Source: Piromyces finnis finn | Lineage: Eukaryota > Fungi > Neocallimastigomycota | Direction of reading: 5' to 3' | Assembly: GCA_002104945.1 (NCBI GenBank) | Contig: MCFH01000019.1 | Span: 124,001-188,000, forward strand | Length of the DNA stretch: 64,000 nt | Part shown: piece after piece, positions 16,062 through 62,700 of the stretch | Layout: every line of letters starts with the position of its first letter | Position numbering within the stretch: position 1 is the stretch's first letter | Translations under genes and position numbers: made by a program | Notes under the pieces: model-generated | What the model was told of the DNA's origin: nothing | Seen by the model: the letters and a program-made list of their open reading frames with translations, nothing else | Databases searched by the model: none

Positions 16062-18643
16062 TAAATAAAATATTCAAAAACTAATTAATATTACCATTAC
16101 TATTCATTTATTTATTTTATTTATAATGATTTTATTTAATATTTGTTTTTTTTTTTTGTTATATTTTTAGATACATTTTATTCAAATATATTGTATTATT
16201 ATATTACATTTTTCTTTATACAAAAAAATATATATATTTTTATTAGAGCTTTTTATTCAGCTAAAAATAAAAATACATATAGACAAACTTTGAATAGGTG
16301 GATAGAAATAAAATAGTTTCAATTCCTTTTATTTTATTGATAATTAAATAATAAATATATCATTACCAATAAATAAAAATGACTTTAAAGTTATTTAATT
16401 TTTTAGCAGTATTGTTATTGAAATTGACAAATACTTTTAAATATTTTTTTCGATTGCTTCAATCTTTAAACTATATTTTTTCTTTAGTTAATTATTGGTT
16501 GTTATTTCAAATATTTAAATTTTGTTCTTCATTTCTTTCTTCTCTTCTTCTTTTATACTTTAAATACTTTTTATACAATTATTTAAAATCCTTTGAGCAT
16601 TTAGCATTTCAATAGGTAAAAAAAAAAAAAAAAGAATCCAATTTAGGTTTTTTTTTTTCCTTTCTTGGCTAAGGAGGAACATCTAAGAGAATACCATTAT
16701 AGCTTTATTGAATTGAATTTATTCAATAATCAAATTTATTAAATGTTTATTAATTAATATAATAATATTAGAATACAAGAATATTTTTATTATATTAATA
16801 ATGTAGAAAAGTTTTTTTTATTTAACTAGACAGCTTTAATTATTTTAGTTATATAGAAAGAAGAAAAGTATAATAATTAAATATTTGCTGCATCTGTCTA
16901 AATAAGTAATTAAAAAAGAATTTTATATATAAATCATAATAAGAAGCATGAAAAATTGCTGTGCATGTCTAATACTAGACATGTTTTTTGCCTTTTTTTT
17001 AGAAAATTTTGTACTTTTTTCTTTTCATCATAAAAATGATGAAGATAAAAACTGATGTTTAAAAAGTTTTCTTAATTCACTTTTCTTCTTTTTATACTAT
17101 TTTTTTTGTTATATATATGTAATATATAAATATCAAAATATTCATAATAACCCATAGTTTACATAAACTTACAACTTATTATCAAATTAAACTACTTAAT
17201 AAAATTATCATTAGCCACTTTTAATATCTTTTATAATTATTTTTATTATTTTTAATGTTTTTAGTGTTTTATTACTTTTAATATTTATTATTGAGAAAGA
17301 TAATTTATCGTATTCTTTTTATCATTTAATTAATAAACTTTTTAAAATTTAAACAATTCAAATTTAATAATATTTTGTGGTTAATTAACAATTTAACAAT
17401 TAAAAATGTGGTAAAATTAAAAATTTTAAATTTTTATTAATTTATAAAATTTTTCATTAATCATTAAAAAGCGCATCCACAAGTAAAATCCGCAAAAAAT
17501 TTAATATTTTAACATTCACCACATTTTGTAATTCATATTATTTTTATTTTTTGTAAAATATAAACTTTCCTTCTGCCAAACTATTTTTATTATTAATATA
17601 AAAAAAGTATAAAAAGAAGAAAAATGAATTAAAAAATTTTTTTTAAACATCAGTTTTTATCTTCATCATTTTTATGATGAAAAGAAAAAAGTACAAAATT
17701 TTCTAAAAAAAAGGCAAAAAACATGTCTAGTATTAGACATGCACAGCAATTTTTCATGCTTCTTATTATGATTTATATATAAAATTCTTTTTTAATTACT
17801 TATTTAGACAGATGCAGCAAATATTTAATTATTATACTTTTCTTCTTTCTATATAACTAAAATAATTAAAGCTGTCTAGTTAAATAAAAAAAACTTTTCT
17901 ACATTATTAATATAATAAAAATATTCTTGTATTCTAATATTATTATATTAATTAATAAACATTTAATAAATTTGATTATTGAATAAATTCAATTCAATAA
18001 AGCTATAATGGTATTCTCTTAGATGTTCCTCCTTAGCCAAGAAAGGAAAAAAAAAAACCTAAATTGGATTCTTTTTTTTTTTTTTTTACCTATTGAAATG
18101 CTAAATGCTCAAAGGATTTTAAATAATTGTATAAAAAGTATTTAAAGTATAAAAGAAGAAGAGAAGAAAGAAATGAAGAACAAAATTTAAATATTTGAAA
18201 TAACAACCAATAATTAACTAAAGAAAAAATATAGTTTAAAGATTGAAGCAATCGAAAAAAATATTTAAAAGTATTTGTCAATTTCAATAACAATACTGCT
18301 AAAAAATTAAATAACTTTAAAGTCATTTTTATTTATTGGTAATGATATATTTATTATTTAATTATCAATAAAATAAAAGGAATTGAAACTATTTTATTTC
18401 TATCCACCTATTCAAAGTTTGTCTATATGTATTTTTATTTTTAGCTGAATAAAAAGCTCTAATAAAAATATATATATTTTTTTGTATAAAGAAAAATGTA
18501 ATATAATAATACAATATATTTGAATAAAATGTATCTAAAAATATAACAAAAAAAAAAAACAAATATTAAATAAAATCATTATAAATAAAATAAATAAATG
18601 AATAGTAATGGTAATATTAATTAGTTTTTGAATATTTTATTTA
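16062..18643. mobile_element. Foldback element copy A (arms 16062-17098 and 17607-18643, core in + orientation)
   Basis: Perfect inverted arms: mirrored coordinates sum to 34705 at the outer end, at the twin 78-aa ORFs and at 17041/17664. No coding content and no clear TSD. Confidence 0.85.
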
Positions 18644-20989: not shown

Positions 20990-23505
20990 TTAATACTATT
21001 TAATATTATGATACATTTTAAATAATATACACAAAATTAATTATTATTTTCTTATTTATAACTTTTTTTTATTTAGTTTAAAATGGTTTTATTTATTAAT
21101 TTTGATTCAAATACATTGTATTGTTATTTCTTTAGATTATATCATATAAATATTTTTATTAAAGCTTTTTATAAAAATTAAAATAAAAACACATATATAG
21201 ACAAGTTTTGAATTATAGAGTAACAATAACATTTTTAATTATTTTTATTGTATTAATAATAAAACTTTTTCTAATTACTAATAAATGAAAATATAGGTAG
21301 TAAATCATTTTTTATTTATTTTTTGTTATTTCAATCTTTAAATTATTTTTTCTTTAATCTATTATCGATTATTATTTCATAGACTTAATCTTTTTGTATA
21401 TTCCATTTTTCTTATCTTCTTTTTCTTCATTAATATTAAAAATATCTATTTAACAGCTATTTAGAGTAGTATTGCTTCATTATCTTTCTGATAGATTCTC
21501 TAAGTGTTTTGGAATTTAATTTACTTTCATATTTTTTCTTCTTTGGCTAGGTAGTTTGGATAGAACATCTAAGAGAATTCCATAATAACTTTATTGAACT
21601 GATTTATTCAAAATTATTTTATATTTAATAATTAATATAATATATAATAATACTAGAATACTAGAATATTTTTATTATATTAATAATGTAGAAAAGTTTT
21701 TTTTATTTAACTAGACAGCTTTAATTATTTTAGTTATATAGAAAGAAGAAAAGTATAATAATTAAATATTTGCTGCATCTGTCTAAATAAGTAGTTAAAA
21801 AAGTATTTTATATATAAATCATAATAAGTAGCATGAAAAATTGCTGTGCATGTCTAATACTAGACATGTTTTTTGCCTTTTTTTTAGAAAATTTTGTACT
21901 TTTTTCTTTTCATCATAAAAATGATGAAGATAAAAACTGATGTTTAAAAAAATTTTTTTAATTCATTTTTCTTCTTTTTATACTTTTTTTATATTAATAA
22001 TAAAAATAGTTTGGCAGAAGGAAAGTTTATATTTTACAAAAAATAAAAATAATATGAATTACAAAATGTGGTGAATGTTAAAATATTAAATTTTTTGAGG
22101 ATTTTACTTGTGGATGCGCTTTTTAATGATTAATGAAAAATTTTATAAATTAATAAAAATTTAAAATTTTTAATTTTACCACATATTTAATTGTTAAATT
22201 GCTAATTAACCACAAAATATTATTAAATTTGAATTTTTTAAATTTTAAAAAGTTTATTAATGAAATGATAAAAAGAATACAATAAATTATCTTTCTCAAT
22301 AATAAATATTAAAAGTAATAAAACACTAAAAACATTATAAATAATAAAAATAATAAAAATAATTATAAAAGATATTAAAAGTGGCTAATGATAATTTTAT
22401 TAAGTAGTTTAATTTGATTATAAGTTGTAAGTTTATGTAAACTATAGGTTATTATGAATATCTTGATATTTATATTTTATTACATATATATAACAAAAAA
22501 ATAGTATAAAAAGAAGAAAAGTGAATTAAAAATTTTTTAAACATCAGTTTTTATCTTCATCATTTTTATGATGAAAAGAAAAAAATACAAAATTTTCTAA
22601 AAAAAAGGCAAAAAACATGTCTAGTATTAGACATGCACAGCAATTTTTCATGCTACTTATTATGATTTATATATAAAATACTTTTTTAACTACTTATTTA
22701 GACAGATGCAGCAAATATTTAATTATTATACTTTTCTTCTTTCTATATAACTAAAATAATTAAAACTGTCTAGTTAAATAAAAAAAACTTTTCTACTTCT
22801 ACATTATTAATATAATAAAAATATTCTAGTATTCTAGTATTATTATATTAATCTTTAAATATAAAATAATTGTTGAATATATCCAGTTTAATAAAGCTAT
22901 TATGGAATTCTCTTAGATGCTCTGTTCTAACTTGTCAATGAAGAAAAAATGTAAATGTAAATTAAATTCCAAAATACTTATAGAATCTTTCAGAAAGATA
23001 ATGACTCCATACTAGTCTAAATAGTTAATAATAAATTAAAGATTAAATTCTATGAAGACTAAATTAATGAAAAATATTTATAATTATTAAATATTTATTG
23101 ATATTTATTTGTATAATAATACTATAAATAAAATGGTTAAATTTCTATGTATTCATAATATTTTTATTTATTAGTAAATTAGTAAACATTATATTACTAA
23201 TGTAATAAATGAAATTAAAATTCTAATTTATTTTTACTCTATAATACAAAGTTTGTCTATATGTATTTTTATTTTAGTTCATTAAAAAAACTTTAATAAA
23301 ATATATATAATAATTCAGTATAAATAAATATAAATAAATACTTATAACAATACAATGTATTCGAATAACATGTATATAAAAATAAAATAATAAACAATAC
23401 CATTTAAATTAAAAAAAAATAAAAATAAAAAATAGTAATTAATTTTTTCTATTTAATGTGTATAGTATAATAGTATTAAATATAATTAATTTTTAATTTT
23501 TTTTA
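20990..23505. mobile_element. Foldback element copy B (core in - orientation; left outer arm diverged)
   Basis: Same inner-arm motifs and core as copy A, with GTGGATGCGC near 22110. Ends are approximate. Confidence 0.8.
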
Positions 23506-24350
23506 TAAAGCTCAATATTTTGATGATAATAAATTTATTGAAACTAAAGATTTTATTAAATTATGTTATGAGTACCCAGAGTTTGCCTATGGTTTCTACT
23601 GGTTATTGAAAGCAAGAAGCGGATACAAGTTAGATGCTAGAATTGCAAAAGCTGCTTAATTTGTTGATCCAGTTTGTCCTAACTACTGTCCATGTTGCAA
23701 GAGTAGAGATCAAAGTATTAAGCATTGATTATTAGATTGTCCAACATTTAAAGATATCCGTATTAAACATTATAATTCCATAGTCCAGTTATTAAATAAT
23801 AACAATAGTAATAATAACAATAGTAGTAATAGAAATAATAATATTAGTAATGATAGCAATAGTGAAGATAATAATTCTAATTTAGATAGTAATTTAGTTA
23901 ATGATAGTAATAGTTCTAATAATCCGGTGAATATTAATGTGTATGATTATTCTAGTGTGTGCAGTAAAATATTTAAATTCCTTCTTGGGGGAAGAAGTTT
24001 TAACAATATCAATTACAATTCAAGGGAATGGAAAGAACTTTGTAAGCGTCAGATTCAATCTGGTACTAACGAAGGAACACCATTCTTGACGGTAACCGCG
24101 GAACTTCTAACCAAAATCATGCCTTTTGTTATTGGCCAGCAATGGTCAATGTTCATAAGGTTTGTAGCAACATCCAAAAGCGTTAATGCTGAAGAAACAG
24201 TAAGACAGGCCAGGAGGGCTAGTGCAACTAATGGAGATCATAATTTTGTCCTATGATAAAATTTTGATCTTTGCCTCGGTGTCCCATTGGAAGTCATATA
24301 CAATTATTATACGTTAGTATAATAGTGGCTTTCTTATTTTAATTAATAAA
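23506..24350 (+). mobile_element. Decayed 3' fragment of a non-LTR retrotransposon (LINE) ORF2, copy 1
   Basis: Translation FYWLLKARSGYKLDARIAKAA*FVDPVCPNYCPCCKSRDQSIKH*LLDCPTFKDIR matches the C-terminal CCHC zinc-finger region of LINE ORF2, with in-frame stops. It includes track ORF 23927..24256. Confidence 0.75.
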
Positions 24351-24820: not shown

Positions 24821-27462
24821 AATAATTTACATAGCACATAACAATTATTTATTTATTTTATCTATAAATTTTTATTTAATTATTTTACAATAGTTTTATT
24901 TATTATTTAAATTTTATTTTATTTTTATATACTTATTATTCAAATACATTGTATTTTTATAAGTATTTATTTATATTTATTTATACTAAATATTATATAT
25001 ATTTTTATTAAAGTTTTTTTATTGAACTAAAATAAAAATACATATAGACAAACTTTGAATTATAGAGTAAAAAAAATAAAACTGTAATTTTATTGTTTTA
25101 TCAGTAATTTTTCAAATTTTTGAATATTTAGTTACTAATTAGTAAAAATAATGATTAAAGTGTTTATAATTCTATTATAGTTGTAGGTTAGAGTATTATT
25201 ATACAAATCAATAAATATTTAATAATTATAAATATTTTTCATTAATTTAGTCTTCATAGAATTTAATCTTTAATTTATTATCAATTATTATTTCATAGAT
25301 TTAATCTTTTTGTTTATTCCTTTTTTCTTATCTTCTTTTTCTTCATTAATACTTAAAATATCTATTTAACAGCTATTTAGAGTAGTATTGGTTCATTATC
25401 TTTCTGAAAGATTCTATAAGTATTTTGGAATTTAATTGACATTTACATTTTTTCTTCTTTGGCTAGGCAGTTAGGATAGAACAACGAGAGGAATACCATA
25501 ATAGCTTTATTGAACTGGATTTATTCAACAATTATTTTATATTTAAAAATTAATATAATAATACTAGAATACTAGAATATTTTTATTATATTAATAATGT
25601 AGAAAAGTTTTTTTTATTTAACTAGACAGCTTTAATTATTTAGTTATATAGAAAGAAGAAAAGTATAATAATTAAATATTTGCTGCATCTGTCTAAATAA
25701 GTAATTAAAAAAGAATTTTATATATAAATCATAATAAGTAGCATGAAAAATTGCTGTGCATGTCTAATACTAGACATGTTTTTTGCTTTTTTTTTAGAAA
25801 ATTTTGTACTTTTTTCTTTTCATCATAAAAATGATGAAGATAAAAACTGATGTTTAAAAAAATTTTTAATTCACTTTTCTTCTTTTTATACTATTTTTTT
25901 TGTTATATATATGTAATATATAAATATCAAGATATTCATAATAACCTATAATTTAAATAAACTTACAGCTTATTATCAAATTGAACTACTTAATAAAATT
26001 ATCATTAGCCACTTTTTAATATCTTTTATAATTATTTTTATTGTTTTTATTATTTATAATGTTTTTAGTGTTTTATTACTTTTAATATTTATTATTGAGA
26101 AAGATAATTCATCGTATTCTTTTTATCATTTCATTAATAAACTTTTTAAAATTTAAAAAACCAAATTTAATAATATTTTGTGGTTAATTAACAATTTTAC
26201 AAATTAAAAATGTGGTAAAATTAAAAATTTTAAATTTTTATTAATTTATAAAATTTTTCATTAATCATTAAAAAGCGCATCCACAAGTAAAATCCTCAAA
26301 AAATTTAATATTTTAACATTCACCACATTTTGTAATTCATATTATTTTTATTTTTTGTAAAATATAAACTTTCCTTCTGCCAAACTATTTTTATTATTAA
26401 TATAAAAAAAGTATAAAAAGAAGAAAAATGAATTAAAAAATTTTTTTTAAACATCAGTTTTTATCTTCATCATTTTTATGATGAAAAGAAAAAAATACAA
26501 AATTTTCTAAAAAAAAAAAGCAAAAAACATGTCTAGTATTAGACATGCACAGCAATTTTTCATGCTGCTTATTATGATTTATATATAAAATACTTTTTTA
26601 ACTACTTATTTAGACAGATGCAGCAAATATTTAATTATTATACTTTTCTTCTTTCTATATAACTAAATAATTAAAGCTGTCTAGTTAAATAAAAAAACTT
26701 TTCTACTTCTACATTATTAATATAATAAAAATATTCTAGTATTCTAGTATTATTATATATTATATTAATTATTAAATATAAAATAATTGTTGAATAAATC
26801 CAATTCAATAAAATTATTATGGTATTCTCATAGATGTTCTATCCTAGATACCTAGCCAAAGAAGAAAAAATATAAATGTAAATTAAATTTCAAAATACTT
26901 ATAGAATCTTTCAGAAAGATAATGAACCAATACTACTCTAAATAGCTGAAAATAGATATTTTAAGTATTAATGAAGAAAAAGAAGATAAGAAAAAAGGAA
27001 TAAACAAAAAGATTAAATCTATGAAATAATAATTGATAATAAATTAAAGATTAAATTTTCTATGAAGACTAAATTAATGAAAAATATTTATAATTATTAA
27101 ATATTTATTAATTTGTATAATAATGCTATGTATTCATAATATTTTTTATTTATTAGTAAAGTAGTAAACGTTATATTACTAATAAAATTGAAAGAATAGA
27201 ATTTAGCTAGAACTTAAATTACTAATAAAAATTTATATTACTAATATTAAACTTTAATTAATAATAAAATTATAATGTAATTACTAATGTAATGTTTCTT
27301 AGAATAATCGTAACATATAGTATTACTAATTTACATTAGCCACATACTTTAGTATAAAAAGGAATTTGTAAATGTATTATTAAAATCTTTGTAATTACCT
27401 TTATTAAATTAAATTTAATAAACATAATAAATAAACTTTATTAAACCTAAATTTACTTTTCA

Positions 27463-30400: not shown

Positions 30401-31754
30401 TGATTCGAACAATAAAATTTCAACATATAAAGCTAGACTTGTTGCTAGAGGATACAAACAAAAATACGGAATTGATTATGACAATATCTACTCACCTACA
30501 TTAGACATTGTTTGCATTAGACTCATTCTATCTTTAGCTGCAAAATTTAAATGGAACACCTACCAGCTAGATATTAAGGCCGCGTATTTAAATGCTCCAT
30601 TAGACAAAAATGTTTATGTTTCTATTCCCCAAGGTGATAAAAACTACAATAAAGGTTTCTGGCTTCTTAAGAAATCGTTATATGGATTAAAACAATCAGG
30701 CCGTAATTGGAATATCACTATCTCTGAATTTCTCTCAAAAATTGGATTTACTCAATGCAAATCGGAATCTTGTTTATTTTATAAAACTTTTGATAATTCT
30801 TTAACTTGTTTAATAGGTCTATACGTAGATGACATGATTATTTCTGGCACTAATCAGGAACTTATTAGCACTATATTAAAAATTAAAAATAAATTTTCTA
30901 TTTCAAAATGTGAAACTATTAATTTCATTTTAGGCATTCAGGTTGTACAGAAAAACTTCAGTTACACTATTTCCCAAAAATCATATATTGAAAACATTTT
31001 ATCAAAATATAATTTTAACAATATTAAAAAATCTAAAACCCCTTGTACTGGTGAAAATTATGTTTCTAAGAACAATTCTTTATTCGATAAAACTATCTAC
31101 AAATCGGCTATTGGTTCTTTAATTCACTTAGCTAAATGCACTCGCCCTGACATTGCTTATGCTGTTAATAATGCCGCCAGATATTGTGAAAATCCTACTG
31201 TTAGTGACTGGCATAAAATCATTAATATATTTAAATATCTCAATTTTTCTATGGAATACTCTATCACTTATGATGGATCTGGTGAATTTATTGCTTATTC
31301 TGATGCTGATTTTGGGGGAGACAAAAATGATAGAAAATCTACATCAGGCAATCTAATTTGTATGGGAAATAAACCAATCTTTTGGTCATCAAAGAAACAA
31401 AAAGTAGTTGCTCTTTCAACAGCTGAAGCGGAACTTATAAGTACTTCAGAACTAACAAGAAAAATCTTATGGCTAAGAAACATTTTTAAAGAAATTTTGA
31501 ACAAAAATATAACAATAAAAATATATACAGATAATTTATCCAGCAAAAAGACAATTGAAAATGGACAATTCAACAACAATATGAAACACATAGACTTAAG
31601 AGAACACTTTATCTTTGACGCTTTTAAAAATAATAAAATAATTTTAGAATATATAAAATCTGAAAATATGCTTGCTGATACATTAACCAAAAATACTAAT
31701 GGGCCAAAAATGACTAAATTCACAAACTTAATTTTTAATAAACAAAATAAATAA
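27477..31754 (+). CDS. Copia Gag-Pol polyprotein (1425 aa)
   Basis: CCHC knuckle CHICNMKNHNTSEC, protease WIYDTGASEH, integrase (HNRLGH..CLHC, IHSDV, SDNGKEY, NGIAERFNRT), RT (YVDDM) and RNase H (YSDADF), in copia order PR-INT-RT-RH. Confidence 0.98.
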   Translation: MATEYILSNHGRPLNGDNFSAWKLRITSILTALNLKNYLDQNITTNEIQDPGEILRIQKENAAAVSIILNNIEDKIYPLITDTDTAHELMENLKILFEQDEDVTLQEWMNKLRDMKVKNHKEILSVTSKMMSIFKQMEKKKLPITEQEKIDYLLGCMPKELKIIFISGTTTTANDLYEDIKNKYKLLYHIGKNKEIRNTRSYDEDMMDIDLVNNIMKFNKGNNNNSRISKYCHICNMKNHNTSECGYNTKNKNRYNKYNNNSNNNRRKLYQNNKRNYNRNNINYLNKKEMDEILSNDGLAYINNINNKENNEKSSNSTTWIYDTGASEHITNDKSILRNFVEQKLKMKCANNTTCEFQGFGTYEGKLNNHNITLKRVLYSKDIAQNLISGIKLAQSHINCEIINKNFKPQLIIKYNNKNIFRTHVNKRNNFKIKTQNNNFNDKKIYCINENLSNNIWHNRLGHYYNKNLENFLKSHKIENNECLHCKISKLNRKPHNGIPPKATRRNEVIHSDVMGPLPPSINQYKYILTFIDEATRKGWVFNLKNKSDVTSTTINFIKLINNNYQNEKIKIFKSDNGKEYNNKKLLNFCKRNGIKKEFSPPYNPQNNGIAERFNRTITSCVKTILFWAKLSLNFWEYAVKHAVYIYNMIPHSCISNKIPNEIYFNKKINLNYLKTFGCIAYYKNFNQNKRKFDINSRKGIYLGFNNNTHCFIIMDFYDHNIHLVREAIFIEEKPGNLKIVSGNNPGYSNILKTKISNGTMVYKHDQESNYEEIDTNHYPTIIKIKNNFDNNYNNISEDSYTEEIFQQNNNHENSDDGYTEEIFQDENNLNNYENDVIIQNKKLVTENSNKDNNENISNNNNKRPLSPTEDTHISKYRITNTTEEENISENIVNNTIYNIDNNDKNSECNTLFSINTEVPLTFNDIFKREDWKEWRRAIRNELFNLYNNKVMIFTKNIPENTNVISTKWVFNIKRDSNNKISTYKARLVARGYKQKYGIDYDNIYSPTLDIVCIRLILSLAAKFKWNTYQLDIKAAYLNAPLDKNVYVSIPQGDKNYNKGFWLLKKSLYGLKQSGRNWNITISEFLSKIGFTQCKSESCLFYKTFDNSLTCLIGLYVDDMIISGTNQELISTILKIKNKFSISKCETINFILGIQVVQKNFSYTISQKSYIENILSKYNFNNIKKSKTPCTGENYVSKNNSLFDKTIYKSAIGSLIHLAKCTRPDIAYAVNNAARYCENPTVSDWHKIINIFKYLNFSMEYSITYDGSGEFIAYSDADFGGDKNDRKSTSGNLICMGNKPIFWSSKKQKVVALSTAEAELISTSELTRKILWLRNIFKEILNKNITIKIYTDNLSSKKTIENGQFNNNMKHIDLREHFIFDAFKNNKIILEYIKSENMLADTLTKNTNGPKMTKFTNLIFNKQNK

Positions 31755-36974: not shown

Positions 36975-39467
36975 AATTTATAATTGTTATATTTATTTAA
37001 TTTTATTTTATTTTTAGATACATATTATTCAAATACATTGTATTTTTATAAGTATTTATTTATATTTATTTATACTAAATTATTATATATATTTTTATTA
37101 AAGTTTTTTTATTGATCTAAAATAAAAATACATATTGACAAACTTTGAATTACAGAGTATAAATAAATTAGAATTTTAATTTCTTTTATTTTATTAGTAA
37201 TAAAATGTTTGCTAATTAACTAATAAATAAAAGTAATGAATATAAAGGTATTTATCTTTATTAGAGTATTGTTATATATATATAATAATTTTAAGCACTT
37301 TTAGATTACTTTAATCATCATACTTTTTTCTCATAAATTTATTAGTTATACAAAGTTATTAATTTTGTTCTTTTTTTATTATTAATTTTTAAGATACTTT
37401 TTTTATATTATTGTAATTCCAAATAGTATTCAATTTATAATCTTTTAAAATATCAATTGTCAAAAAAAGATTCTAACCTAAGTTTTTTCTTCTTCTTTGG
37501 CAAGGTAGTTAGTATAGAACATCTAAGAGAATACCATAATAACTTTATTGAACTGGATTTATTCAACAATTATTTTATATTTAAAGATTAATATAACAAT
37601 ACTAGAATACTAGAATATTTTTATTATATTAATAATGTAGAAAAGTTTTTTTTTATTTAACTAGACAGCTTTAATTATTTTAGTTATATAGAAAGAAGAA
37701 AAGTATAATAATTAAATATTTGCTGCATCTGTCTAAATAAGTAGTTAAAAAAGTATTTTATATATAAATCATAATAAGTAGCATGAAAAATTGCTGTACA
37801 TGTCTAATACTAGACATGTTTTTTGCTTTTTTTTTTAGAAAATTTTGTATTTTTTTCTTTTCATCATAAAAATGATGAAGATAAAAACTGATGTTTAAAA
37901 AAAATTTTTTAATTCATTTTTCTTCTTTTTATACTTTTTTTATATTAATAATAAAAATAGTTTGGCAGAAGGAAAGTTTATATTTTACAAAAAATAAAAA
38001 TAATATGAATTACAAAATGTGGTGAATGTTAAAATATTAAATTTTTTGCGGATTTTACTTGTGGATGCGCTTTTTAATGATTAATTTAAAATTTTATAAA
38101 TTAATAAAAATTTTAAATTTTTAATTTTACCACATTTTTAATTGTTAAATTGTTAATTAACCACAAAATATTATTAAATTTGAATTGTTTAAATTTTAAA
38201 AAGTTTATTAATTAAATGATAAAAAGAATACGATGAATTATCTTTCTCAATAATAAATATTAAAAGTAATAAAACACTAAAAACATTAAAAATAATAAAA
38301 ATAATAAAAATAATTATAAAAGATATTATAAAGTGGCTAATGATAATTTTATTAAGTAGTTTAATTTGATAATAAGTTGTAAGTTTATGTAAACTATGGG
38401 TTATTATGAATATTTTGATATTTATATATTACATATATATAACAAAAAAAATAGTATAAAAAGGAGAAAAGTGAATTAAGAAAACTTTTTAAACATCAGT
38501 TTTTATCTTCATCATTTTTATGATGAAAAGAAAAAAGTACAAAATTTTCTAAAAAAATAAAGCAAAAAACATGTCTAGTATTAGACATGCACAGCAATTT
38601 TTCATGCTACTTATTATGATTTATATATAAAATTCTTTTTTAATTACTTATTTAGACAGATACAGCAAATATTTAATTATTATACTTTTCTTCTTTCTAT
38701 ATAACTAAAATAATTAAAGCTGTCTAGTTAAATAAAAAAAACTTTTCTACTTCTACATTGTTAATATAATAAAAATAATCTAGTATTCTAGTATTATTAT
38801 ATTAATTAATAAACATTTAATAAATTTGATTATTGAATAAATTCAATTCAATAAAGCTATTATGGTATTCTCTTAGATGTTCTATCCTAACTACCTAGCC
38901 AATGAAGAAAAAAATGTAAATGTAAATTAAACTTCAAAACATTTATAGAATCTTCCAAAAAGATAATGACCCCATACTACTCTAAATAGTTGAAAATATA
39001 TATTTTAAGTATTAATGAAGAAAAAGAAGATAAGAAAAATGGAATAAACAAAAAGATTAAATCTATGAAATAATAATTGATAATAAATTAAAGATTAAAT
39101 TCTATGAAAACTAAATTACTGAAAAATATTTATAATTATTAAATATTTATTGATATTTATTTATATAATAATACTATAAATATAATGGTTAAATTTCTAT
39201 GTATTCATAATATTTTTTATTTATTAGTAAATTAGTAAACATTATATTACTAATGTAATAAATGAAATTAAAATTCTAATTTATTTTTACTCTATAATAC
39301 AAAGTGTGTCTATATGTGTTTTTATTTTAGTTTAATAAAATAACTTTAATAAAAATATATATAATAATTCAGTATAAATAAATATAAATAAATACTTATA
39401 ACAATACAATGTATTTGAATAATATGTATCTGAAAATAAAATAAGATTTAAATAATAAATAAAACTA
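36975..39467. mobile_element. Foldback element copy D (core -)
   Basis: Same motifs and core, with GTGGATGCGC at 38061. Its right end abuts and truncates the ORF on the - strand. Confidence 0.85.
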
Positions 39468-45455: not shown

Positions 45456-46088
45456 TTAAATAAAATATGAAATAATTTTACATCCTTTACCACAATAAGC
45501 ATCAGTTGTACCACAGTAACCGTATTTACTACAACATTTGTTATTTTTACATTTGTAAATACCATCAGATAGACTTCCACATTTATCATTAGATAATATG
45601 GTTGGAGTTGAAGGGTTTTTTTGGGTTGTAACATCTTTAGCATAAAATGTTTTAGTGCCAACAATATAAGTTTTCTCAGGAACAGTAAAAGTGTTAGAAT
45701 AAGTAACTACTTTATTAGTATTAGAATTGATAGAAGTGCTCTTTTTAGTTTTAGCTAATGTAGTAGTTTTAACTGTATTTGATTTTGATTTTGTGGTGGT
45801 TTCGGAATTAGCATTGAAAGCATTATTACTATTTATTTCATTTTTTAATTTATCAAAAACTTCGGAATTATTCATCTCATCTTGCAATTTGTCGAATACA
45901 TCAGAGTTGTCCATTTCATTTTTTAATTTGTCGAATACATCAGAGTTGTCCATTTCATTTTGTAATTTATCAAAAATATTAGAATTGTCCATTTCATACT
46001 TTAATTTATCAAAAATATCAGAATCAAATGAACCATTTGAAGTTACCATAGTTATTAGTAATAATGAAAGTATGCTAATAAGTAACAT
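45456..46088 (-). CDS. Secreted protein with five 13-aa helical repeats, a Thr/Ser/Lys linker and a C-terminal chitin-binding (CBM18/hevein) domain
   Basis: Signal peptide; 39-bp repeats (NSDVFDKLKNEMD-type); CGSLSDGIYKCKNNKCCSKYGYCGTTDAYCGKGC. The last hevein Cys pair appears missing. Confidence 0.85.
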   Translation of the reverse strand: MLLISILSLLLITMVTSNGSFDSDIFDKLKYEMDNSNIFDKLQNEMDNSDVFDKLKNEMDNSDVFDKLQDEMNNSEVFDKLKNEINSNNAFNANSETTTKSKSNTVKTTTLAKTKKSTSINSNTNKVVTYSNTFTVPEKTYIVGTKTFYAKDVTTQKNPSTPTILSNDKCGSLSDGIYKCKNNKCCSKYGYCGTTDAYCGKGCKIISYFI

Positions 46089-47543: not shown

Positions 47544-48871
47544 TTATTTATTATTTGTTAATGACATAGCAAAAGCATATTCCAAAAATGAATCATTTAT
47601 ATCAGGAATATTTGTGGAAAAAGGATAATAATAAATTTCATCATCATTATAATCATAAACTACACCTGTTTTGTCTGTAATAAGATCTTCCATACTTTTG
47701 GCAGGTTCTCTTTGCAAATAGCCTGTAGAAGAGGTATTAAGAGAAGTTGAAATAATCCCAACACGATCTGATTTGGAATGCACAAATAGCTCTTTTGCAA
47801 TAAGTCCTATAAAATAAGAACTCTTAATGTAACATTTTGGCAAAACAGCTTGAACTCCTACTGACATTAAAATTTGAATTATGTTATCGATTTTACCTTT
47901 CGAACCACTATTAACAATATTGGTTAAATGATTGTTTATAGATTCAGATAATTTTTCTAATAATTTATAATCACTGTAACGACGATTTTTTAATCTATTG
48001 TTGCTGATAGATTTACTTTGATTTAGAATGGAAGAGTCCAAATTTGATAATGATAGTGTCGGTAAAAATAAATCTGGAATATTTTCCAAAATACATTTAA
48101 ATTTATTTTCAATGCTAGGGGTATGCAATCCGAAATAGAAATACTTATGATATGAAATAAATTATATTCATGAGCCGTACGTTGAACATCCCGCATAAAT
48201 TTTAAATAAAAATCATTACCGTAATGAGTAATGGAATTCAATAAAATCTTTTGATTTTCACCACTAATAGTGTGGAGTAGAATGCCACGGTCAACCAAAA
48301 TCTCATTTCCATTTTTTAATGTTAATGTTTTTGGAAGCAACAATGAAAGTAAATGTTTATACGGTATTTTATTGGTCTTCATTCGAGACTTGTAAAATTT
48401 ACAAAATATATTCCATTCCTTTTTTGATATTTTTAATTTTTCACATATGTTTTCGATAATATGAGGTTCAACAATGTGTTGATCGTTTGTCATATTGTAT
48501 AAGCCAGTCAAGGTATCTTGAATAAAACTAATCATGAGTGATCCATCCTTGAAAGAACGGATATTATTTGAAATGTTTAATTTAGTAGCTAATTCCTTTT
48601 TGGACTCTTTTCCCGGTAGCCAAAAAATATTCATTTCATCCCCATCAAAATCAGCTTGAAAAACATTGGCTATTAGAGGATTAATTTGGATGATTTGACT
48701 GCTGCTGGGAAAGGAACGAACTGATAAAATGGAAGTAATTTGAAGTGTAGGCTGTCTATTAATAATTACATAGTCATTTGGTTTATATCCATATGGAATT
48801 AATTGATCTGTAAATACCTTTGGTATCAAAATTTTATCTAGTGGTACATTTATATTTGGTACAATGAATAT
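47544..48871 (-). pseudogene. Divergent multisubunit RNA polymerase largest subunit (Rpb1/beta-prime-like), partial, with a -1 frameshift near 48120
   Basis: VIINRQPTL, QADFDGDEMN (catalytic DxDxD) and QDTLTG in ORF 48023..48829; GSKG, SSYFIGL and TSSTGYLQR..KSMEDL in ORF 47544..48128. The frames join at a C4 run (ATA CCCC TAGC). The frame is open upstream to 48871. Confidence 0.9.
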
Positions 48872-49524: not shown

Positions 49525-52205
49525 AAAAATAAAAATTAATTGTATTTTAATACCATTATACTATACACATTAAATAAAAAAATTAATTACTACTTTTTAT
49601 TTTTATTTTTTTTAATTTAAATGGTATTGTTTATTATTTTATTTTTATATACATATTATTCGAATACATTGTATTGTTATAAGTATTTATTTATACTAAA
49701 TATTATATATATTTTATTAAAGTTATTTTATTGAACTAAAATAAAAATACATATAGACAAACTTTGAATTATAGAGTAAAAATAAATTAGAATTTTAATT
49801 TCATTTATTATATTAGTAATATAACGTTTACTACTTTACTAATAAATAAAAAATATTATTAATACATAGCATTATTATACAAGTTAATAAATATTTAATA
49901 ATTATAAATATTTTTCAGTAATTTAGTCTTCATAGAATTTAATCTTTAATTTATTATCAATTATTATTTCATAGATTTAATCTTTTTGTTTATTCCATTT
50001 TTCTTATCTTCTTTTTCTTCATTAATACTTAAAATATCTATTTTCAGCTATTTAGAGTAGTATTGGTTCATTATCTTTCTGAAAGATTCTATAAGTATTT
50101 TGAAATTTAATTTACATTTATATTTTTTCTTCTTTGGCTAGGTATCTAGGATAGAACATCTATGAGAATACCATAATAATTTTATTGAATTGGATTTATT
50201 CAAAATTATTTTATATTTAATAATTAATATAATATATAATAATACTAGAATACTAGAATATTTTTATTATATTAATAATGTAGAAGTAGAAAAGTTTTTT
50301 TATTTAACTAGACAGCTTTAATTATTTAGTTATATAGAAAGAAGAAAAGTATAATAATTAAATATTTGCTGCATCTGTCTAAATAAGTAGTTAAAAAAGT
50401 ATTTTATATATAAATCATAATAAGTAGCATGAAAAATTGCTGTGCATGTCTAATACTAGACATGTTTTTTGCTTTTTTTTTTAGAAAATTTTGTATTTTT
50501 TTCTTTTCATCATAAAAATGATGAAGATAAAAACTGATGTTTAAAAAAAATTTTTTAATTCATTTTTCTTCTTTTTATACTTTTTTTATATTAATAATAA
50601 AAATAGTTTGGCAGAAGGAAAGTTTATATTTTACAAAAAATAAAAATAATATGAATTACAAAATGTGGTGAATGTTAAAATATTAAATTTTTTGCGGATT
50701 TTACTTGTGGATGCGCTTTTTAATGATTAATGAAAAATTTTATATATTAATAAAAATTTAAAATTTTTAATTTTACCACATTTTTAATTTGTAAAATTGT
50801 TAATTAACCACAAAATATTATTAAATTTGGTTTTTTAAATTTTAAAAAGTTTATTAATGAAATGATAAAAAGAATACGATGAATTATCTTTCTCAATAAT
50901 AAATATTAAAAGTAATAAAACACTAAAAACATTATAAATAATAAAAACAATAAAAATAATTATAAAAGATATTAAAAAGTGGCTAATGATAATTTTATTA
51001 AGTAGTTTAATTTGATAATAAGCTGTAAGTTTATGTAAACTATGGGTTATTATGAATATCTTGATATTTATATATTACATATATATAACAAAAAAATAGT
51101 ATAAAAAGGAGAAAAGTGAATTAAGAAAACTTTTTAAACATCAGTTTTTATCTTCATCATTTTTATGATGAAAAGAAAAAAGTACAAAATTTTCTAAAAA
51201 AAAAAAGCAAAAAACATGTCTAGTATTAGACATGCACAGCAATTTTTCATGCTGCTTATTATGATTTATATATAAAATACTTTTTTAATTACTTATTTAG
51301 ACAGATGCAGCAAATATTTAATTATTATACTTTTCTTCTTTCTATATAACTAAAATAATTAAAGCTGTCTAGTTAAATAAAAAAAACTTTTCTACTTCTA
51401 CATTATTAATATAATAAAAATATTCTAGTATTCTAGTATTATTATATATTATATTAATTATTAAATATAAAATAATTGTTGAATAAATCCAGTTCAATAA
51501 AGCTACTATGATATTCTCTTAGATGTTCTATCCTAACTGCCTTGCCAAAGAAGAAAAAATGTAAATGCCAATTAAATTTCAAAATACTTATAGAATCTTT
51601 CAGAAAGATAATGACCCCATACTACTCTAAATAGTTGAAAATAGATATTTTAAGTATTAATGAAGAAAAAGAAGATAAGAAAAAAGGAATAAACAAAAAG
51701 ATTAAATCTATGAAATAATAATTGATAATAAATTAAAGATTAAATTCTATGAAGACTAAATTAATGAAAAATATTTATAATTATTAAATATTTATTGATA
51801 TTTATTTGTATAATAATACTATAAATAAAATGGTTAAATTTCTATGTATTCATAATATTTTTATTTATTAGTAAATTAGTAAACATTATATTACTAATGT
51901 AATAAATGAAATTAAAATTCTAATTTATTTTTACTCTATAATACAAAGTTTGTCTATATGTATTTTTATTTTAGTTCATTAAAAAAACTTTAATAAAATA
52001 TATATAATAATTCAGTATAAATAAATATAAATAAATACTTATAACAATACAATGTATTCGAATAACATGTATATAAAAATAAAATAATAAACAATACCAT
52101 TTAAATTAAAAAAAAATAAAAATAAAAAATAGTAATTAATTTTTTCTATTTAATGTGTATAGTATAATAGTATTAAATATAATTAATTTTTTAATTTTTT
52201 TTATA
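49525..52205. mobile_element. Foldback element copy E (core -)
   Basis: 49525-49700 is the inverse of 52020-52205; same core and motifs as the other copies. Confidence 0.85.
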
Positions 52206-53631: not shown

Positions 53632-56139
53632 AATAGTTTTATTTATTATTTAAATTTTATTTTATTTTTATATACTTATTATTCAAATACATTGTATTTT
53701 TATAAGTATTTATTTATATTTATTTATACTAAATATTATATATATTTTTATTAAAGTTTTTTTATTGAACTAAAATAAAAATACATATAGACAAACTTTG
53801 AATTATAGAGTAAAAAAAATAAAACTGTAATTTTATTGTTTTATCAGTAATTTTTCAAATTTTTGAATATTTAGTTACTAATTAGTAAAAATAATGATTA
53901 AAGTGTTTATAATTCTATTATAGTTGTAGGTTAGAGTATTATTATACAAATCAATAAATATTTAATAATTATAAATATTTTTCATTAATTTAGTCTTCAT
54001 AGAATTTAATCTTTAATTTATTATCAATTATTATTTCATAGATTTAATCTTTTTGTTCATTCCTTTTTTCTTATCTTCTTTTTCTTCATTAATACTTAAA
54101 ATATCTATTTTCAGCTATTTAGAGTAGTATTGCTTCATTATCTTTCTGAAAGATTCTATAAGTATTTTGAAATTTAATTTACATTTATATTTTTTCTTCT
54201 TTGGCTAGGTAGTTTGGATAGAACATCTAAGAGAATTCCATAATAACTTTATTGAACTGATTTATTCAACAATTATTTTATATTTAATAATTAATATAAT
54301 ATATAATAATACTAGAATACTAGAATATTTTTATTATATTAATAATGTAGAAGTAGAAAAGTTTTTTTTATTTAACTAGACAGCTTTAATTATTTAGTTA
54401 TATAGAAAGAAGAAAAGTATAATAATTAAATATTTGCTGCATCTGTCTAAATAAGTAATTAAAAAAGAATTTTATATATAAATCATAATAAGTAGCATGA
54501 AAAATTGCTGTGCATGTCTAATACTAGACATGTTTTTTGCTTTTTTTTTAGAAAATTTTGTACTTTTTTCTTTTCATCATAAAAATGATGAAGATAAAAA
54601 CTGATGTTTAAAAAAATTTTTAATTCACTTTTCTTCTTTTTATACTATTTTTTTGTTATATATATGTAATATATAAATATCAAGATATTCATAATAACCT
54701 ATAATTTAAATAAACTTACAGCTTATTATCAAATTAAACTACTTAATAAAATTATCATTAGCCACTTTTAATATCTTTTATAATTAATTTTATTATTTTT
54801 ATTATTTTTAATGTTTTTAGTGTTTTATTACTTTTAATATTTATTATTGAGAAAGATAATTCATCGTATTCTTTTTATCATTTCATTAATAAACTTTTTA
54901 AAATTTAAAAAACCAAATTTAATAATATTTTGTGGTTAATTAACAATTTTACAAATTAAAAATGTGGTAAAACTAAAAATTTTAAATTTTTATTAATTTA
55001 TAAAATTTTTCATTAATCATTAAAAAGCGCATCCACAAGTAAAATCCTCAAAAAATTTAATATTTTAACATTCACCACATTTTGTAATTCATATTATTTT
55101 TATTTTTTGTAAAATATAAACTTTCCTTCTGCCAAACTATTTTTATTATTAATATAAAAAAAGTATAAAAAGAAGAAAAATGAATTAAAAAATTTTTTTT
55201 AAACATCAGTTTTTATCTTCATCATTTTTATGATGAAAAGAAAAAAATACAAAATTTTCTAAAAAAAAAAAGCAAAAAACATGTCTAGTATTAGACATGC
55301 ACAGCAATTTTTCATGCTGCTTATTATGATTTATATATAAAATACTTTTTTAACTACTTATTTAGACAGATGCAGCAAATATTTAATTATTATACTTTTC
55401 TTCTTTCTATATAACTAAATAATTAAAGCTGTCTAGTTAAATAAAAAAACTTTTCTACTTCTACATTATTAATATAATAAAAATATTCTAGTATTCTAGT
55501 ATTATTATATATTATATTAATTATTAAATATAAAATAATTGTTGAATAAATCAGTTCAATAAAGTTATTATGGTATTCTCATAGATGTTCTATCCTAGAT
55601 ACCTAGCCAAAGAAGAAAAAATATAAATGTAAATTAAATTTCAAAATACTTATAGAATCTTTCAGAAAGATAATGAACCAATACTACTCTAAATAGCTGA
55701 AAATAGATATTTTAAGTATTAATGAAGAAAAAGAAGATAAGAAAAAAGGAATAAACAAAAAGATTAAATCTATGAAATAATAATTGATAATAAATTAAAG
55801 ATTAAATTTTCTATGAAGACTAAATTAATGAAAAATATTTATAATTATTAAATATTTATTAATTTGTATAATAATGCTATGTATTCATAATATTTTTTAT
55901 TTATTAGTAAAGTAGTAAACGTTATATTACTAATAAAATAAATGAAATTAAAATTCTAATTTATTTTTATTCCATAATTCAAAGTTTGTCTATATGTATT
56001 TTTATTTTAGTTCAATAAAATAACTTTAATAAAAATATATATAATAATTCAGTATAAATAAATATTTATAAAAATATAATGTATTTAAATAATAAGTATA
56101 TGAAAATAAAATAAAATTTAAATAATAAATAAAACTATT
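53632..56139. mobile_element. Foldback element copy F (core +), uninterrupted twin of copy C
   Basis: Same termini as copy C; 2508 bp. Confidence 0.87.
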
Positions 56140-59012: not shown

Positions 59013-60617
59013 ATGAAGGGTTTATTTAAAATCTCTACTTTATTATTAGCTTTAGGTTCAAGAGCATTTGGAAATTTCATTGAAAATCTTGGAAGAGATT
59101 TTGAAATCTTTGATAATACAGTTATAAACATTGATGTTAAATTCCCAGAAGATAAATATGAAGAATTAATGAAAGCTGTCCAAATTAATGCTGACAGTAC
59201 AGAAGTTGAAAATGTTCAATCTCTTACCGATTATGAAATTAAAAATGCCACTATTACTTTTACCTATGGAGACAAAACTGAAGTTTTTGAAAACTCCATC
59301 TTTAAAACTGGTGGAATGTTCTCAAGATCTAACCAAAAGGTTGGTTATAACCTTAAGCTTAGCCGTGACTTTTTAGGAAGAAAAAGTTATAAGGTTAGAG
59401 CTGAATTCAATGATTACACTCGTATGCGTCAAAAGCTTTCTTATGATATTTTAAATAGAAGTGGTGAACCATCTGTTCAAGCTGCTTTCTCTAAGCTTAC
59501 TATCAATGATAAATTCTTTGGATTCTACACATTTACTGATGTTTTTAAACCACACATGCTTAAAACTCTTTTCAACCTTGAAAGCACTAAAAATATGATT
59601 CTTTATCAAAACAAAGTTGAAGGTTTCTTTTTCAATGAACCAGCCGCTCCATTCTTTGTCGATTCCACTGCCAATGATGAAGAAGAAGGTGACTTTGAAG
59701 AATTAGAAAAAATCAATAAAATTATATCAGAATCAAAATCCATTGAAGATCTTGAACCATACATTGATGTCGATAACTTCTTAAGACATTTAGCTTTTGA
59801 TTGGTTATTCGGCTCTTTTGATTCTCTTATTATTACTGGTCACAACTTCTATTTATACAAAAGACCAAGTGACAACAAATGGCAAATATTCTATTATGAC
59901 TTTGATTTTACTTTTGGTCATGGTGTTGAAGAAAGTTTTGGAGTAACATCTATTGATTTTTCATACTTCCCATTCGAGTTTTACAATGCCAATAGTAATG
60001 TTCTTGTTAACTCTTTAGTAATGAATGACAATACTCGTTTCAAAAAGATTTTAAAAGAAATTTTAATTAATTGTTTCAATCCAACTATCTTAAATAAGAG
60101 AATTGATGAAATCAAAGCATTCATTGATCCATACATTAAGGAAGATTATACTCCAATTGATGGAGCTTTACCAGGTAGAGTTAATCTTGTTGGTAAGAAA
60201 GAAACTGCAACTTATGAATTATTCCAAGCCAGTACTGAAAGACACATTGATGACTACCATGCTGGTTTAAAGCCATTCATTGAATCTATATTTAATGTTG
60301 CTTGTGAAGAATTCGGATTAGATCCAAAAGAAATTCAAGAAGCTTCTGCTACTGCTAAACCAATTTCTTTCTTCCAAAAAATGAAAGGTTTACCATCAGA
60401 AGATTTAACTGATAATGAAGAAGAAGAAGAATGTGATTCTGAAGAAGAAATCGTTGATGTTAACGAACCATCTAATGTTGATGATGAAGAAGAATGTGAT
60501 TCTGAAGAAGAAATCGTTGATGTTAACGAACCAATTTCTACTGATAATGATGATGAAAGTGATTTTGAAGAAGAAGAAGAAGTCAATTATAAAAATTATC
60601 ACAAAAATCATTATTAA
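59013..60617 (+). CDS. cotH: Secreted CotH-family atypical protein kinase with an acidic repeat tail (534 aa)
   Basis: Signal peptide; FKTGGMFSR, KVRAEFNDYTRMRQKLSYDIL, DWLFGSFDS..HNFYLY and WQIFYYDFDFTFG; tail repeats EEEECDSEEEIVDVNEP x2. Intronless. Confidence 0.9.
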   Translation: MKGLFKISTLLLALGSRAFGNFIENLGRDFEIFDNTVINIDVKFPEDKYEELMKAVQINADSTEVENVQSLTDYEIKNATITFTYGDKTEVFENSIFKTGGMFSRSNQKVGYNLKLSRDFLGRKSYKVRAEFNDYTRMRQKLSYDILNRSGEPSVQAAFSKLTINDKFFGFYTFTDVFKPHMLKTLFNLESTKNMILYQNKVEGFFFNEPAAPFFVDSTANDEEEGDFEELEKINKIISESKSIEDLEPYIDVDNFLRHLAFDWLFGSFDSLIITGHNFYLYKRPSDNKWQIFYYDFDFTFGHGVEESFGVTSIDFSYFPFEFYNANSNVLVNSLVMNDNTRFKKILKEILINCFNPTILNKRIDEIKAFIDPYIKEDYTPIDGALPGRVNLVGKKETATYELFQASTERHIDDYHAGLKPFIESIFNVACEEFGLDPKEIQEASATAKPISFFQKMKGLPSEDLTDNEEEEECDSEEEIVDVNEPSNVDDEEECDSEEEIVDVNEPISTDNDDESDFEEEEEVNYKNYHKNHY

Positions 60618-61479: not shown

Positions 61480-62700
61480 TAACGAATTTAAATTTTGTGG
61501 TTAATAAAAATTAGTGAGGTGGTAGAGTTAAAATTTTAAATTTAAATTTTAAATTGTAATATTATTTTATAGTAAAAATTAAAACAAAAAGAGAAATTAT
61601 CTACGAAAGGGTGGTAAATGTTATAAATGTAATATTATCAAGGTCAAGTAATTTAATTATTATTAAATAAATAAAATTTTTTTAAGATAATTTAAAATTT
61701 TATTAAAATAAAAAAAAAAGTATAAAAGAAAAAAAAAAGAATCAAATAAATTTAAAAAATCATGTTATCCATGAAAAGAAAGAAATATAAAAAGAATTTA
61801 ACAAAAAACAAAAAAACAAAAAAAGATAATTCAAATGAATTTATTTCATAATTATCATTTTATATAGTATTGTTATAGCTTTATAATATTTTAATATTCA
61901 TTCAAATATTATAATATTATATCGTTATAATGATTTTAAACTTATCAACAACGAGAACCCACACGTCTAGTATTAGACATGCACTGCAATCACTTTATCT
62001 CTTTTACTTTTTGTTAGCTAACTTGGATAACTTTTAATGTAGACAGATGCAGCAAATGCAGCAAATGCATGCAAATGCAAGCAAATGCAGCCAGCTAATA
62101 ATTTAGCTAAATATGAAAAAAAAAGCTGTCTAGTTTTTATGCAAAACAACATGTCTAGTATTAGACATGTACAGCAATCTTTCTTGCAACTCTATTTTAT
62201 AAATTAATAATATGATAATAATAATACAATAATAATAATACAATAATAATAATGAATATATTTCTACAATATATAGACAGATGCAGCAAATAATTAATCA
62301 CTATGAATGCTCTATTTTATATATATATTATTATATATAAATTATTATATATAAATTATTTATTTAAAGCTGTCTAGTTTTGTTTAAATATATAATCAAT
62401 TAATCATTGATAACAATATAATGAAATTGTAATATTTGTTAAAATTTATAAATATTTAATAATTTGCCCTTCTAATATTCAGTAACTCGAACTCTAAGAA
62501 ATTCTTTTCTAATCTAGTCAAAAAAAGAAGAAAAAATAAATCTGAATTCCTATATGGCAAATGGCTCATTAAAATAATCTCAAAAGCATACTCTCATGGA
62601 TATACTAAAGATATACAATCAAAGATTTATGAATATGACTTTAAAACTACCTTAAAATAAAAAGTACATCGGCAAGATAAATCATGAAATGGACAACGCC
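61480..62700 (+). repeat. Distant half-copy of the foldback family (core + one arm) with a duplicated motif triad
   Basis: TTTTGTGGTTAAT (61492), two M1-M2-M3 triads (61964-62133 and 62150-62380), and CTAGTCAAAAAAAGAAGAAAAAATAAA (cf. CTAGCCAAAGAAGAAAAAATATAAA in the arms), all in the same order as in the foldback right half. Confidence 0.7.

Follow-up and report, generated by a model that had tools for sequence, protein, structure and literature searches.

What do the conspicuous palindromes in the genome of the gut fungus Piromyces finnis carry, and why are the same short blocks found in their arms again and again? The stretch considered here, hereafter called the window, comprises 64,000 nucleotides of contig MCFH01000019.1 (positions 124,001 to 188,000) with a GC content of 18%, and contains six foldbacks of one type (type 1) at ~16.8, 21.7, 25.6, 37.7, 50.3 and 54.4 kb. 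Each of them consists of two arms inverted around a core in the order M3-M2-M1-HP, core, HP-M1-M2-M3, the sense strand of the motifs being directed outward from the core in both arms. A first-pass annotation of this DNA had reduced M1 and M2 to a common motif, TAGACA-N4-CAGCAA, for which it left two possible meanings: iterated DNA sites for a transposase, an initiator or a transcription factor, or else pairing elements of a structured RNA in which M2 (TAGACAG) pairs with M3 (CTGTCTA). The evidence presented below argues for the second, since the M2-M3 helix matches the stem that closes a unit found repeatedly in phages, where such stems covary, and a model built from phage units alone finds the fungal ones. 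The fungal grammar is thus very probably homologous to the handle of a class of Y-RNA-like units in phage genomes.

Motif grammar in the fungal genome

All the motif positions reported earlier were borne out. With at most one mismatch allowed, TAGACA-N4-CAGCAA is present 28 times in the window (0.09 expected), AAAGCTGTCTAGTT 14 times (0.49 expected) and the M1 palindrome at 14 sites (0 expected), and every type-1 M1 has, as described, the hairpin TTCATCAT-N4-ATGATGAA (HP) on its core side. M1 and M2 can indeed be reduced to one motif, since both are the 5' strand of a single handle, the partner of which lies upstream in M1, forming a hairpin, and downstream, as M3, in M2. The genome-wide scan that the annotation had recommended found 43 exact sites in the 56-Mb genome of P. 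finnis (3 for a reversed-pattern control), 39 of which are concentrated in one cluster of 65 kb (C101:140-204 kb). The remaining four belong to a diverged foldback, type 3, present on contig C115 and at the end of contig C190 in copies that are reverse complements of one another. A search of the 104-kb region for further, hidden handles added none: wherever CAGCAA stands in a TAGACA context, the site was already known.

At 61960-62385 the M1-M2-M3 triad does occur twice, in tandem, and its first M1 is degenerate as previously noticed, with one stem mismatch (CACGTCTA) and CTGCAA for CAGCAA. The view of this locus as a distant relative of the foldbacks needs to be qualified: the relation holds, but the locus is not a solitary one. 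It is one of five double-triad arms (type 2), the other four lying just past the window as two divergent pairs.

It had been argued, too, that spacers as conserved as the motifs would speak against selection on the latter; the earlier observation stands, with differences between the classes compared. Among four paralogous classes of triad the 52 motif bases are 90-98% identical, whereas the spacers of types 1 and 2 resemble each other only at the level of shuffled sequences and vary in length (50-96 and 51-80 nt). This does not apply to types 1 and 3, the spacers of which are homologous (78-81%); moreover, the first ~13 nt past M1 are alike in three of the four classes. Within the twelve type-1 arms, variable columns number 2 of 52 in the motifs, both at 'N' positions, against 64 of 340 elsewhere (Fisher p = 0.005).

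Counterparts in phages

Metagenome contigs were scanned with a query of two bare TAGACA-N4-CAGCAA copies, 35-65 nt apart, which returned two phage-like contigs (L007 and L008) in addition to unrelated repeats. Both contigs also have elements that the query did not contain, namely a hairpin xxxGTCTA-N4-TAGACxxx before the first box and CTGTCTAG after the second, with the order and spacing seen in the fungus, and the block extends up to the ribosome-binding site of a gene coding for a DUF2828 + DUF7788 (vWA) protein. Nearby units on these contigs have different stems that are always complementary (TAGACACC/GGTGTCTAG, TAGGCGCT/AGCGCCTAG and TAGATGCC/GGCATCTAG). A scan of viral contigs then gave 118 loci, the phage set amounting to 121 overall; gut and Bacillus phages contain hundreds of units in which TAG-N5-N-ACAGCAA is followed, after 25-120 nt, by the complement and CTAG. 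A perfect 7-bp partner ending in CTA lies 15-130 nt downstream of 212 of the 240 TAG-N6-ACAGCAA sites, as compared with 5.5 when stems are swapped between units. This comparison constitutes the fair test of pairing, because the alignment of 83 phage units, in which 5 of 8 stem pairs change on both sides, was preselected for pairing.

The genomic context of these units is that of tRNA genes, of which the phage loci contain 715, on the same strand as the units; 39 units follow a tRNA at a distance of 0-7 nt, and 54 precede one by 4-10 nt. A homologue of DUF2828 is present in 55 of the 121 loci, despite flanks that were cut short. The interior of short units (25-50 nt) contains, in most cases, a small hairpin whose 7-nt loop resembles that of an anticodon. 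In long units the interior (90-120 nt) contains a T arm, then a closed acceptor-like stem, then a D arm, the order of the permuted tRNA-like domain of YrlA. The long units match the Rfam family YrlA (RF02553, 'Y RNA-like') with 32-50 bits (expectation value, E, 2e-8 to 3e-3), short of the gathering score of 69; this weak match concerns just their tRNA-like core, and the phage units themselves have no match in Rfam. In four loci (L007, L008, L074 and L082) the handle takes a different form: a capped hairpin followed by ACAGCAA is present, as an insert of 51-55 nt, within the anticodon region of a tRNA-like gene that is normal in other respects. The order in L082 is tRNA(handle)-unit-unit-tRNA(handle)-unit-unit-DUF2828, an arrangement that the fungal double triad resembles. 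In the cultured Bacillus phage Tsamsa, four units lie between a tRNA array and gp247, annotated as 'RNA-binding protein', and a 12/12 sigma-70-type promoter ends 9 nt ahead of the first unit. We therefore regard the phage units as small RNAs of the Y-RNA kind, with a handle that differs from the published binding box. The literature searched (DUF2828; ACAGCAA with phage and tRNA) yielded no description of this handle.

Three additional observations concern the phage loci. A large unit of Tsamsa (L153:3690-3825) has a box that reads ACAGCGAA, containing the CGAA of Ro60-binding Y RNAs; this single case hints that the ACAGCAA and CGAA boxes are variants of each other, and ACAGCGAA was not seen as a regular variant at the same register. 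One phage tRNA gene (L007:3030-3164, minus strand) has a 66-nt insert in the anticodon loop with a T-arm-like hairpin and no handle. Another phage tRNA, with the CTA anticodon of an amber suppressor (L149:6950-7020, minus strand), lies in unit-bearing arrays, the boundaries of the units being themselves TAG and CTAG.

How well do the fungal modules fit this phage family? We built a covariance model, R1, from the 83 phage units only, with an 8-bp closing stem as its structure. Applied to the twelve type-1 M2-M3 units of the window, R1 gives 40.6-44.3 bits (E 6e-8 to 5e-7). Run on the whole genome, with the best 150 candidates scored, it retrieves at E <= 0.01 only 11 type-1 and four type-3 units. 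Types 1 and 3 score 36-44 bits, and for the units at 40-44 bits the genome-wide E is 5e-5 to 4e-3. In all units of types 1, 2 and 3, TAGACAG pairs with CTGTCTA + G, and the pairing of the 5' and 3' ends that characterizes Y RNAs is seen both in the R1 match and in folding. The M1b strand, TAGACATG-C-ACAGCAA, fits the phage form TAG-N5-N-ACAGCAA exactly, its partner strand lying upstream as in the phage tRNA-like genes; in M2 the first A of the box ACAGCAA is replaced by G, save for the copy at 38653, where it is A. The hairpin form, M1, is outside R1, and its independent phage examples are few. A tRNA scan detected no tRNA genes in the window, which is expected for a eukaryotic locus; the tRNA array is part of the context and not of the structure. 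The possibility that the region is an integrated phage was rejected, since the open reading frames of the window have no homology with the proteins of the phage loci.

Could the resemblance between fungal motifs and phage units be fortuitous, the two being unrelated? The common core is short (~25 specified bases) and an AT-rich interior raises the score of the model; yet at E 0.01 R1 matches nothing else in the same AT-rich genome, the hairpin variant and the order of M1 before the unit match as well, and the fungus carries a protein partner of phage type. We consider such a coincidence extremely improbable. A second alternative is that of sites acting at the level of DNA, in which TAGACA half-sites would bind a transposase, a recombinase or a transcription factor and the foldbacks would be non-autonomous foldback transposons or a recombination hotspot: the loci are indeed long inverted repeats, their cores are flipped between neighbouring copies, and TAGACA is present four times per arm in both orientations. 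Nevertheless, the copies are not dispersed, being limited to one cluster plus one other locus, and no transposase was seen; the order of the units relative to a TATA-like box is fixed; and the phage grammar is strand-specific, co-oriented with tRNAs and endowed with covarying stems that a sequence-specific DNA binder could not tolerate. On these grounds we have rejected the readings as foldback transposons and as transcription factor sites, and regard the DNA-level explanation, of which the first-pass annotation had offered a version, as very unlikely.

The putative protein partner and its proposed RNAs

If the motifs are RNA handles, which protein would hold them? In P. finnis, DUF2828 genes that are intact and free of introns lie on contigs C180, C156 and C201, the last with two copies, and there is a fragment as well. 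The DUF2828 proteins of this genome include ORX42160.1 and ORX59368.1. One of these proteins shows 46% identity to the L007 protein along its full length and 61% to the L082 protein, the closest to the fungal one within our sample. An AlphaFold model of the fungal protein (predicted local distance difference test, pLDDT, 85.8) was compared with known structures by Foldseek, and the top 12 listed matches are all Ro60/TROVE proteins, over ~500 columns and with E of 1.8e-9 to 3.6e-5; they include those of phage phiLo, Deinococcus (Rsr), Xenopus and human. The fungal DUF2828 protein is therefore predicted, from this model, to have the Ro60 fold, namely a HEAT-repeat ring plus vWA. Pfam TROVE gives no match to this protein, and no canonical TROVE gene was found in the P. 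finnis genome. In a midpoint-rooted tree of 27 sequences, in which the P. finnis paralogues are the only eukaryotic ones, the two fungal proteins are sisters (100/96) and lie beside L082 (97/94) inside a phage clade (100/100). Piromyces sp. E2, Anaeromyces, Neocallimastix and Orpinomyces have homologues with 67-85% identity, and those that follow (~62%) are from gut phages and Lachnospiraceae; the fungal gene is therefore older than the split of these genera. The family as a whole is labelled 'RNA-binding protein' in PHROGs and is large, with 710 records in cultured phages and more than 7,000 database proteins. In Neocallimastix lanati and N. californiae (L156 and L157), the DUF2828 genes form head-to-tail arrays of at least 6 copies with a period of ~3.6 kb.

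The foldbacks and the protein genes also have a rare palindrome in common. The type-1 core contains an inverted AAATGTGGT pair, and the same pair is found ~500 nt upstream of DUF2828 start codons. The pattern AAATGTGGT-N20-120-ACCACATTT occurs at nine places in the genome (0 for the reversed-pattern control): five of them are type-1 cores, three lie upstream of DUF2828 genes and one is elsewhere. Since the three regions at DUF2828 genes are mutual duplicates, they amount to about a single independent event. An exact copy of ACCACATTT lies ~370 nt upstream of the Anaeromyces DUF2828 gene. When DUF2828 upstream regions were compared with the foldbacks by blastn, the only matches were of low-complexity AT sequence. 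In addition, an outward-pointing TATA-like GTATAAAAAG lies ~115 nt upstream of every type-1 M1, accounting for 12 of the 17 occurrences of this box in the 104 kb. Such a layout would fit divergent, TATA-driven transcription units sharing an upstream element with the protein genes.

We can now formulate an explanation for the whole system. The handle would consist of a helix of 7-8 bp (UAGACNN/NNGUCUA) and of the box (A/G)CAGCAA, which is single-stranded and comes after the 5' strand of the helix. It would exist in two topologies: in M2 + M3 the helix would close a unit of 75-105 nt, while in M1 a 4-nt loop would cap this helix. Transcription of each fungal arm would proceed away from the foldback core and give an RNA with two handles; as Ro60 binds Y RNAs, so the DUF2828/vWA proteins of P. 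finnis (ORX42160.1 and its paralogues) would bind these handles. The RNA modules would have come from a phage locus of the type tRNA-like gene with handle, unit(s), DUF2828 gene, and would later have been copied as inverted pairs. We infer, then, fungal transcription, binding of the protein to the handles and joint transfer of the RNA and protein genes: the fungus probably took over the whole phage RNA-protein particle, and its copies are probably still functional. In its full form, the statement that the arms give rise to Y-RNA-like transcripts serving a Ro60-like protein of phage origin, and that these fungal copies still work, appears to us reasonably probable. A further elaboration can be advanced only tentatively, namely that gut fungi domesticated a complete phage ribonucleoprotein and rebuilt its RNA genes as divergent units whose promoters are TATA-like and whose regulation is coupled to that of the protein genes via the AAATGTGGT palindrome.

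Several results weigh against this explanation. Transcription of the fungal arms, its direction and the ends of the RNAs are features that we infer. No handles are found near the DUF2828 genes of P. finnis, which are on other contigs, nor are there modules within 10 kb of such genes in Anaeromyces robustus, Piromyces sp. E2 and Neocallimastix, and the AAATGTGGT palindrome is absent from type-2 cores and from the Neocallimastix arrays. The fungal box, (A/G)CAGCAA, is neither GNCGAA nor GGUCCGA, the boxes published for Ro60 binding in bacteria and animals, respectively; the arms have no match to tRNA or YrlA even at E 5, and a search of Rfam with the window and with one foldback returned nothing. 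While the M1 hairpin region reaches a folding z of -3.2, the fungal closed units fold barely better than shuffled sequences (z -0.4 to -2.3), and their stems are invariant, so that the fungus itself offers no covariation. RNA polymerase III makes the eukaryotic Y RNAs, and the T-runs inside the fungal units argue against this polymerase. Finally, conservation restricted to the motifs may overstate constraint, because AT-rich spacers can change quickly through slippage.

Some of this evidence would be expected if the arms were a dead relic: phage Y-RNA DNA would have entered the lineage, lost its function and been copied by local palindromic duplication, the motifs looking preserved because the copies are young or gene-converted. 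The confinement of the copies to the 65-kb cluster and one other locus is consistent with such a fate, as are the mutual identity of the type-1 arms (92-98%), the decay of the first type-2 M1 and the slipped microsatellite in the unit next to it, besides the lack of modules beside the DUF2828 genes of the four fungi. We nonetheless judge the relic unlikely, given the retention of the motif bases across four classes, two of which have spacers of different length that are no more similar than shuffled sequences, the rare palindrome common to foldback cores and DUF2828 upstream regions, and a protein partner that is intact, multi-copy and kept in at least four genera.

If the Y-RNA-like explanation is true, it would provide an RNA partner and a binding handle for the large, uncharacterised DUF2828 family, reveal a widespread and uncatalogued class of short phage RNAs within tRNA arrays and account for the cargo of the conspicuous palindromes of this region. 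It would also represent a horizontal transfer into a eukaryote that retained a non-coding RNA component besides the protein gene; should domestication of the ribonucleoprotein be confirmed, this would be a rare instance of a non-coding RNA partner from a bacterial virus entering a eukaryote and remaining in use.

Layout of the region and known systems

Coordinates of the fungal handle elements in the window
Feature	Position	Strand	Description
Type-1 foldback 1	16824..17881	both arms	M3-M2-M1-HP-TATA-like box (-), core, TATA-like box-HP-M1-M2-M3 (+)
Foldback 1, closed units	16824-16902; 17803-17881	-; +	R1 40.6 bits, E 4.5e-7
Foldback 1, core inverted AATGTGGT pair	17405-17412; 17518-17525	+; -	
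Foldback 1, TATA-like GTATAAAAAG	17088; 17607	-; +	
Type-1 foldback 2	21709..22775		Layout as foldback 1; core inverted relative to foldback 1
Type-1 foldback 3	25620..26686		R1 42.7 bits
Type-1 foldback 4	37659..38729		Unit 38651-38729 has phage-consensus ACAGCAA; top R1 score, 44.3 bits, E 5.8e-8
Type-1 foldback 5	50306..51374		Motif layout and R1 match
Type-1 foldback 6	54374..55438		Motif layout and R1 match
Type-2 arm, first M1	61962..61989	+	Hairpin handle CACGTCTA-GTAT-TAGACATG, then box CACTGCAA
Type-2 arm, first closed unit	62040..62133	+	TAGACAG + ATGCAGCAA as 5' strand and box; CTGTCTAG closes the stem
Type-2 arm, second M1	62150..62177	+	Perfect 8-bp hairpin handle + TACAGCAA
Type-2 arm, second closed unit	62274..62377	+	TAGACAG ATGCAGCAA ... 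CTGTCTAG; 80-nt AT-rich interior

The two closed units of the type-2 arm in the window differ in their match to the phage model. The first is recognised by R1 at 62038-62135 (23.9 bits, E 0.004) and contains an inner hairpin, AGCTAA-TAAT-TTAGCT (62093-62108), which the minimum-energy fold retains together with the closing stem; the second is absent among the full-length matches of R1, probably because its interior is long. The box of the first unit has grown by slippage into a (ATGCAGCAA)n run with decayed copies (62047-62095), and similar runs are present at ~72.0k, 73.5k, 77.8k and 79.2k (window coordinates; L001-L002), with a copy number that varies by arm, two at most arms and three at 79.2k.

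Other features of the region are the following. An intact copia-type gag-pol open reading frame of 1425 aa (27477-31754, plus strand; RVT_2, rve and Retrotran_gag_2) lies between foldbacks. Adjacent frames with RNA polymerase Rpb1 domains 2-3 (47544-48829) and 4-5 (45456-46088), both on the minus strand, have in their vicinity a 210-aa frame with a chitin-binding domain; this block is within the foldback cluster, and its frames are without homologue in the phage loci examined. A gene for a CotH-domain protein of 534 aa (59013-60617, plus strand) is directly upstream of the type-2 arm. A coding-like fragment is repeated at 24137 and 52880, as well as at -6455, -3279 and 68767, and includes a 109-aa open reading frame at 23927-24256; it is probably another repeat family, and a related stretch lies upstream of the DUF2828 paralogue on C156 (L031:3186-3366).

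How does this system compare with those already known? Particles of Ro60 and Y RNA are known from animals, some bacteria and a few phages, and we came across none described from fungi, no paper in the literature searched mentioning both Neocallimastigomycota and Ro60. The bacterial and phage Y RNAs (YrlA/YrlB; RF02553) are partners of Ro60/Rsr (Chen et al. 2014, PMC4201824; Thermus phage phiLo Yrl1/Yrl2, PMC12135203) and have a published Ro60-binding box of GNCGAA or CGAA (PMC4201824, PMC12135203). Our units are similar to YrlA and YrlB in the pairing of their 5' and 3' ends and in the short, conserved, single-stranded box after the 5' strand; those of phages also lie just upstream, and on the same strand, of a gene for a Ro60-type ring + vWA protein, and the long ones have, as does YrlA, a permuted arrangement of T arm, closed acceptor stem and D arm. 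They differ in having ACAGCAA as the box and a partner that belongs to Pfam DUF2828 + DUF7788 instead of TROVE. Furthermore, most phage units are short, with a hairpin like an anticodon arm replacing the tRNA-like domain, and some are true tRNA-like genes with the handle at the anticodon, whereas the fungal copies are without a tRNA-like part, far from the protein genes and arranged as inverted pairs.

With the eukaryotic Y RNAs (vertebrate hY1-5 and those of nematodes and insects) the fungal system would share the eukaryotic host, a protein of Ro60 fold and small RNA modules made of a stem plus a box. Those RNAs, however, are products of RNA polymerase III with a U-run at their end, and canonical TROVE Ro60 binds them through GGUCCGA, while the fungal units have internal T-runs, TATA-like boxes upstream and a protein that is nearest to phage proteins in our sample. 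The likeness to foldback transposons resides in the arms of 0.2-1 kb inverted around a short core. Such transposons are recognised by dispersed copies, whereas the fungal ones are clustered, with the 39 of 43 exact sites in a single region and no transposase seen, and their conserved blocks are those of an RNA handle that is common with phages.
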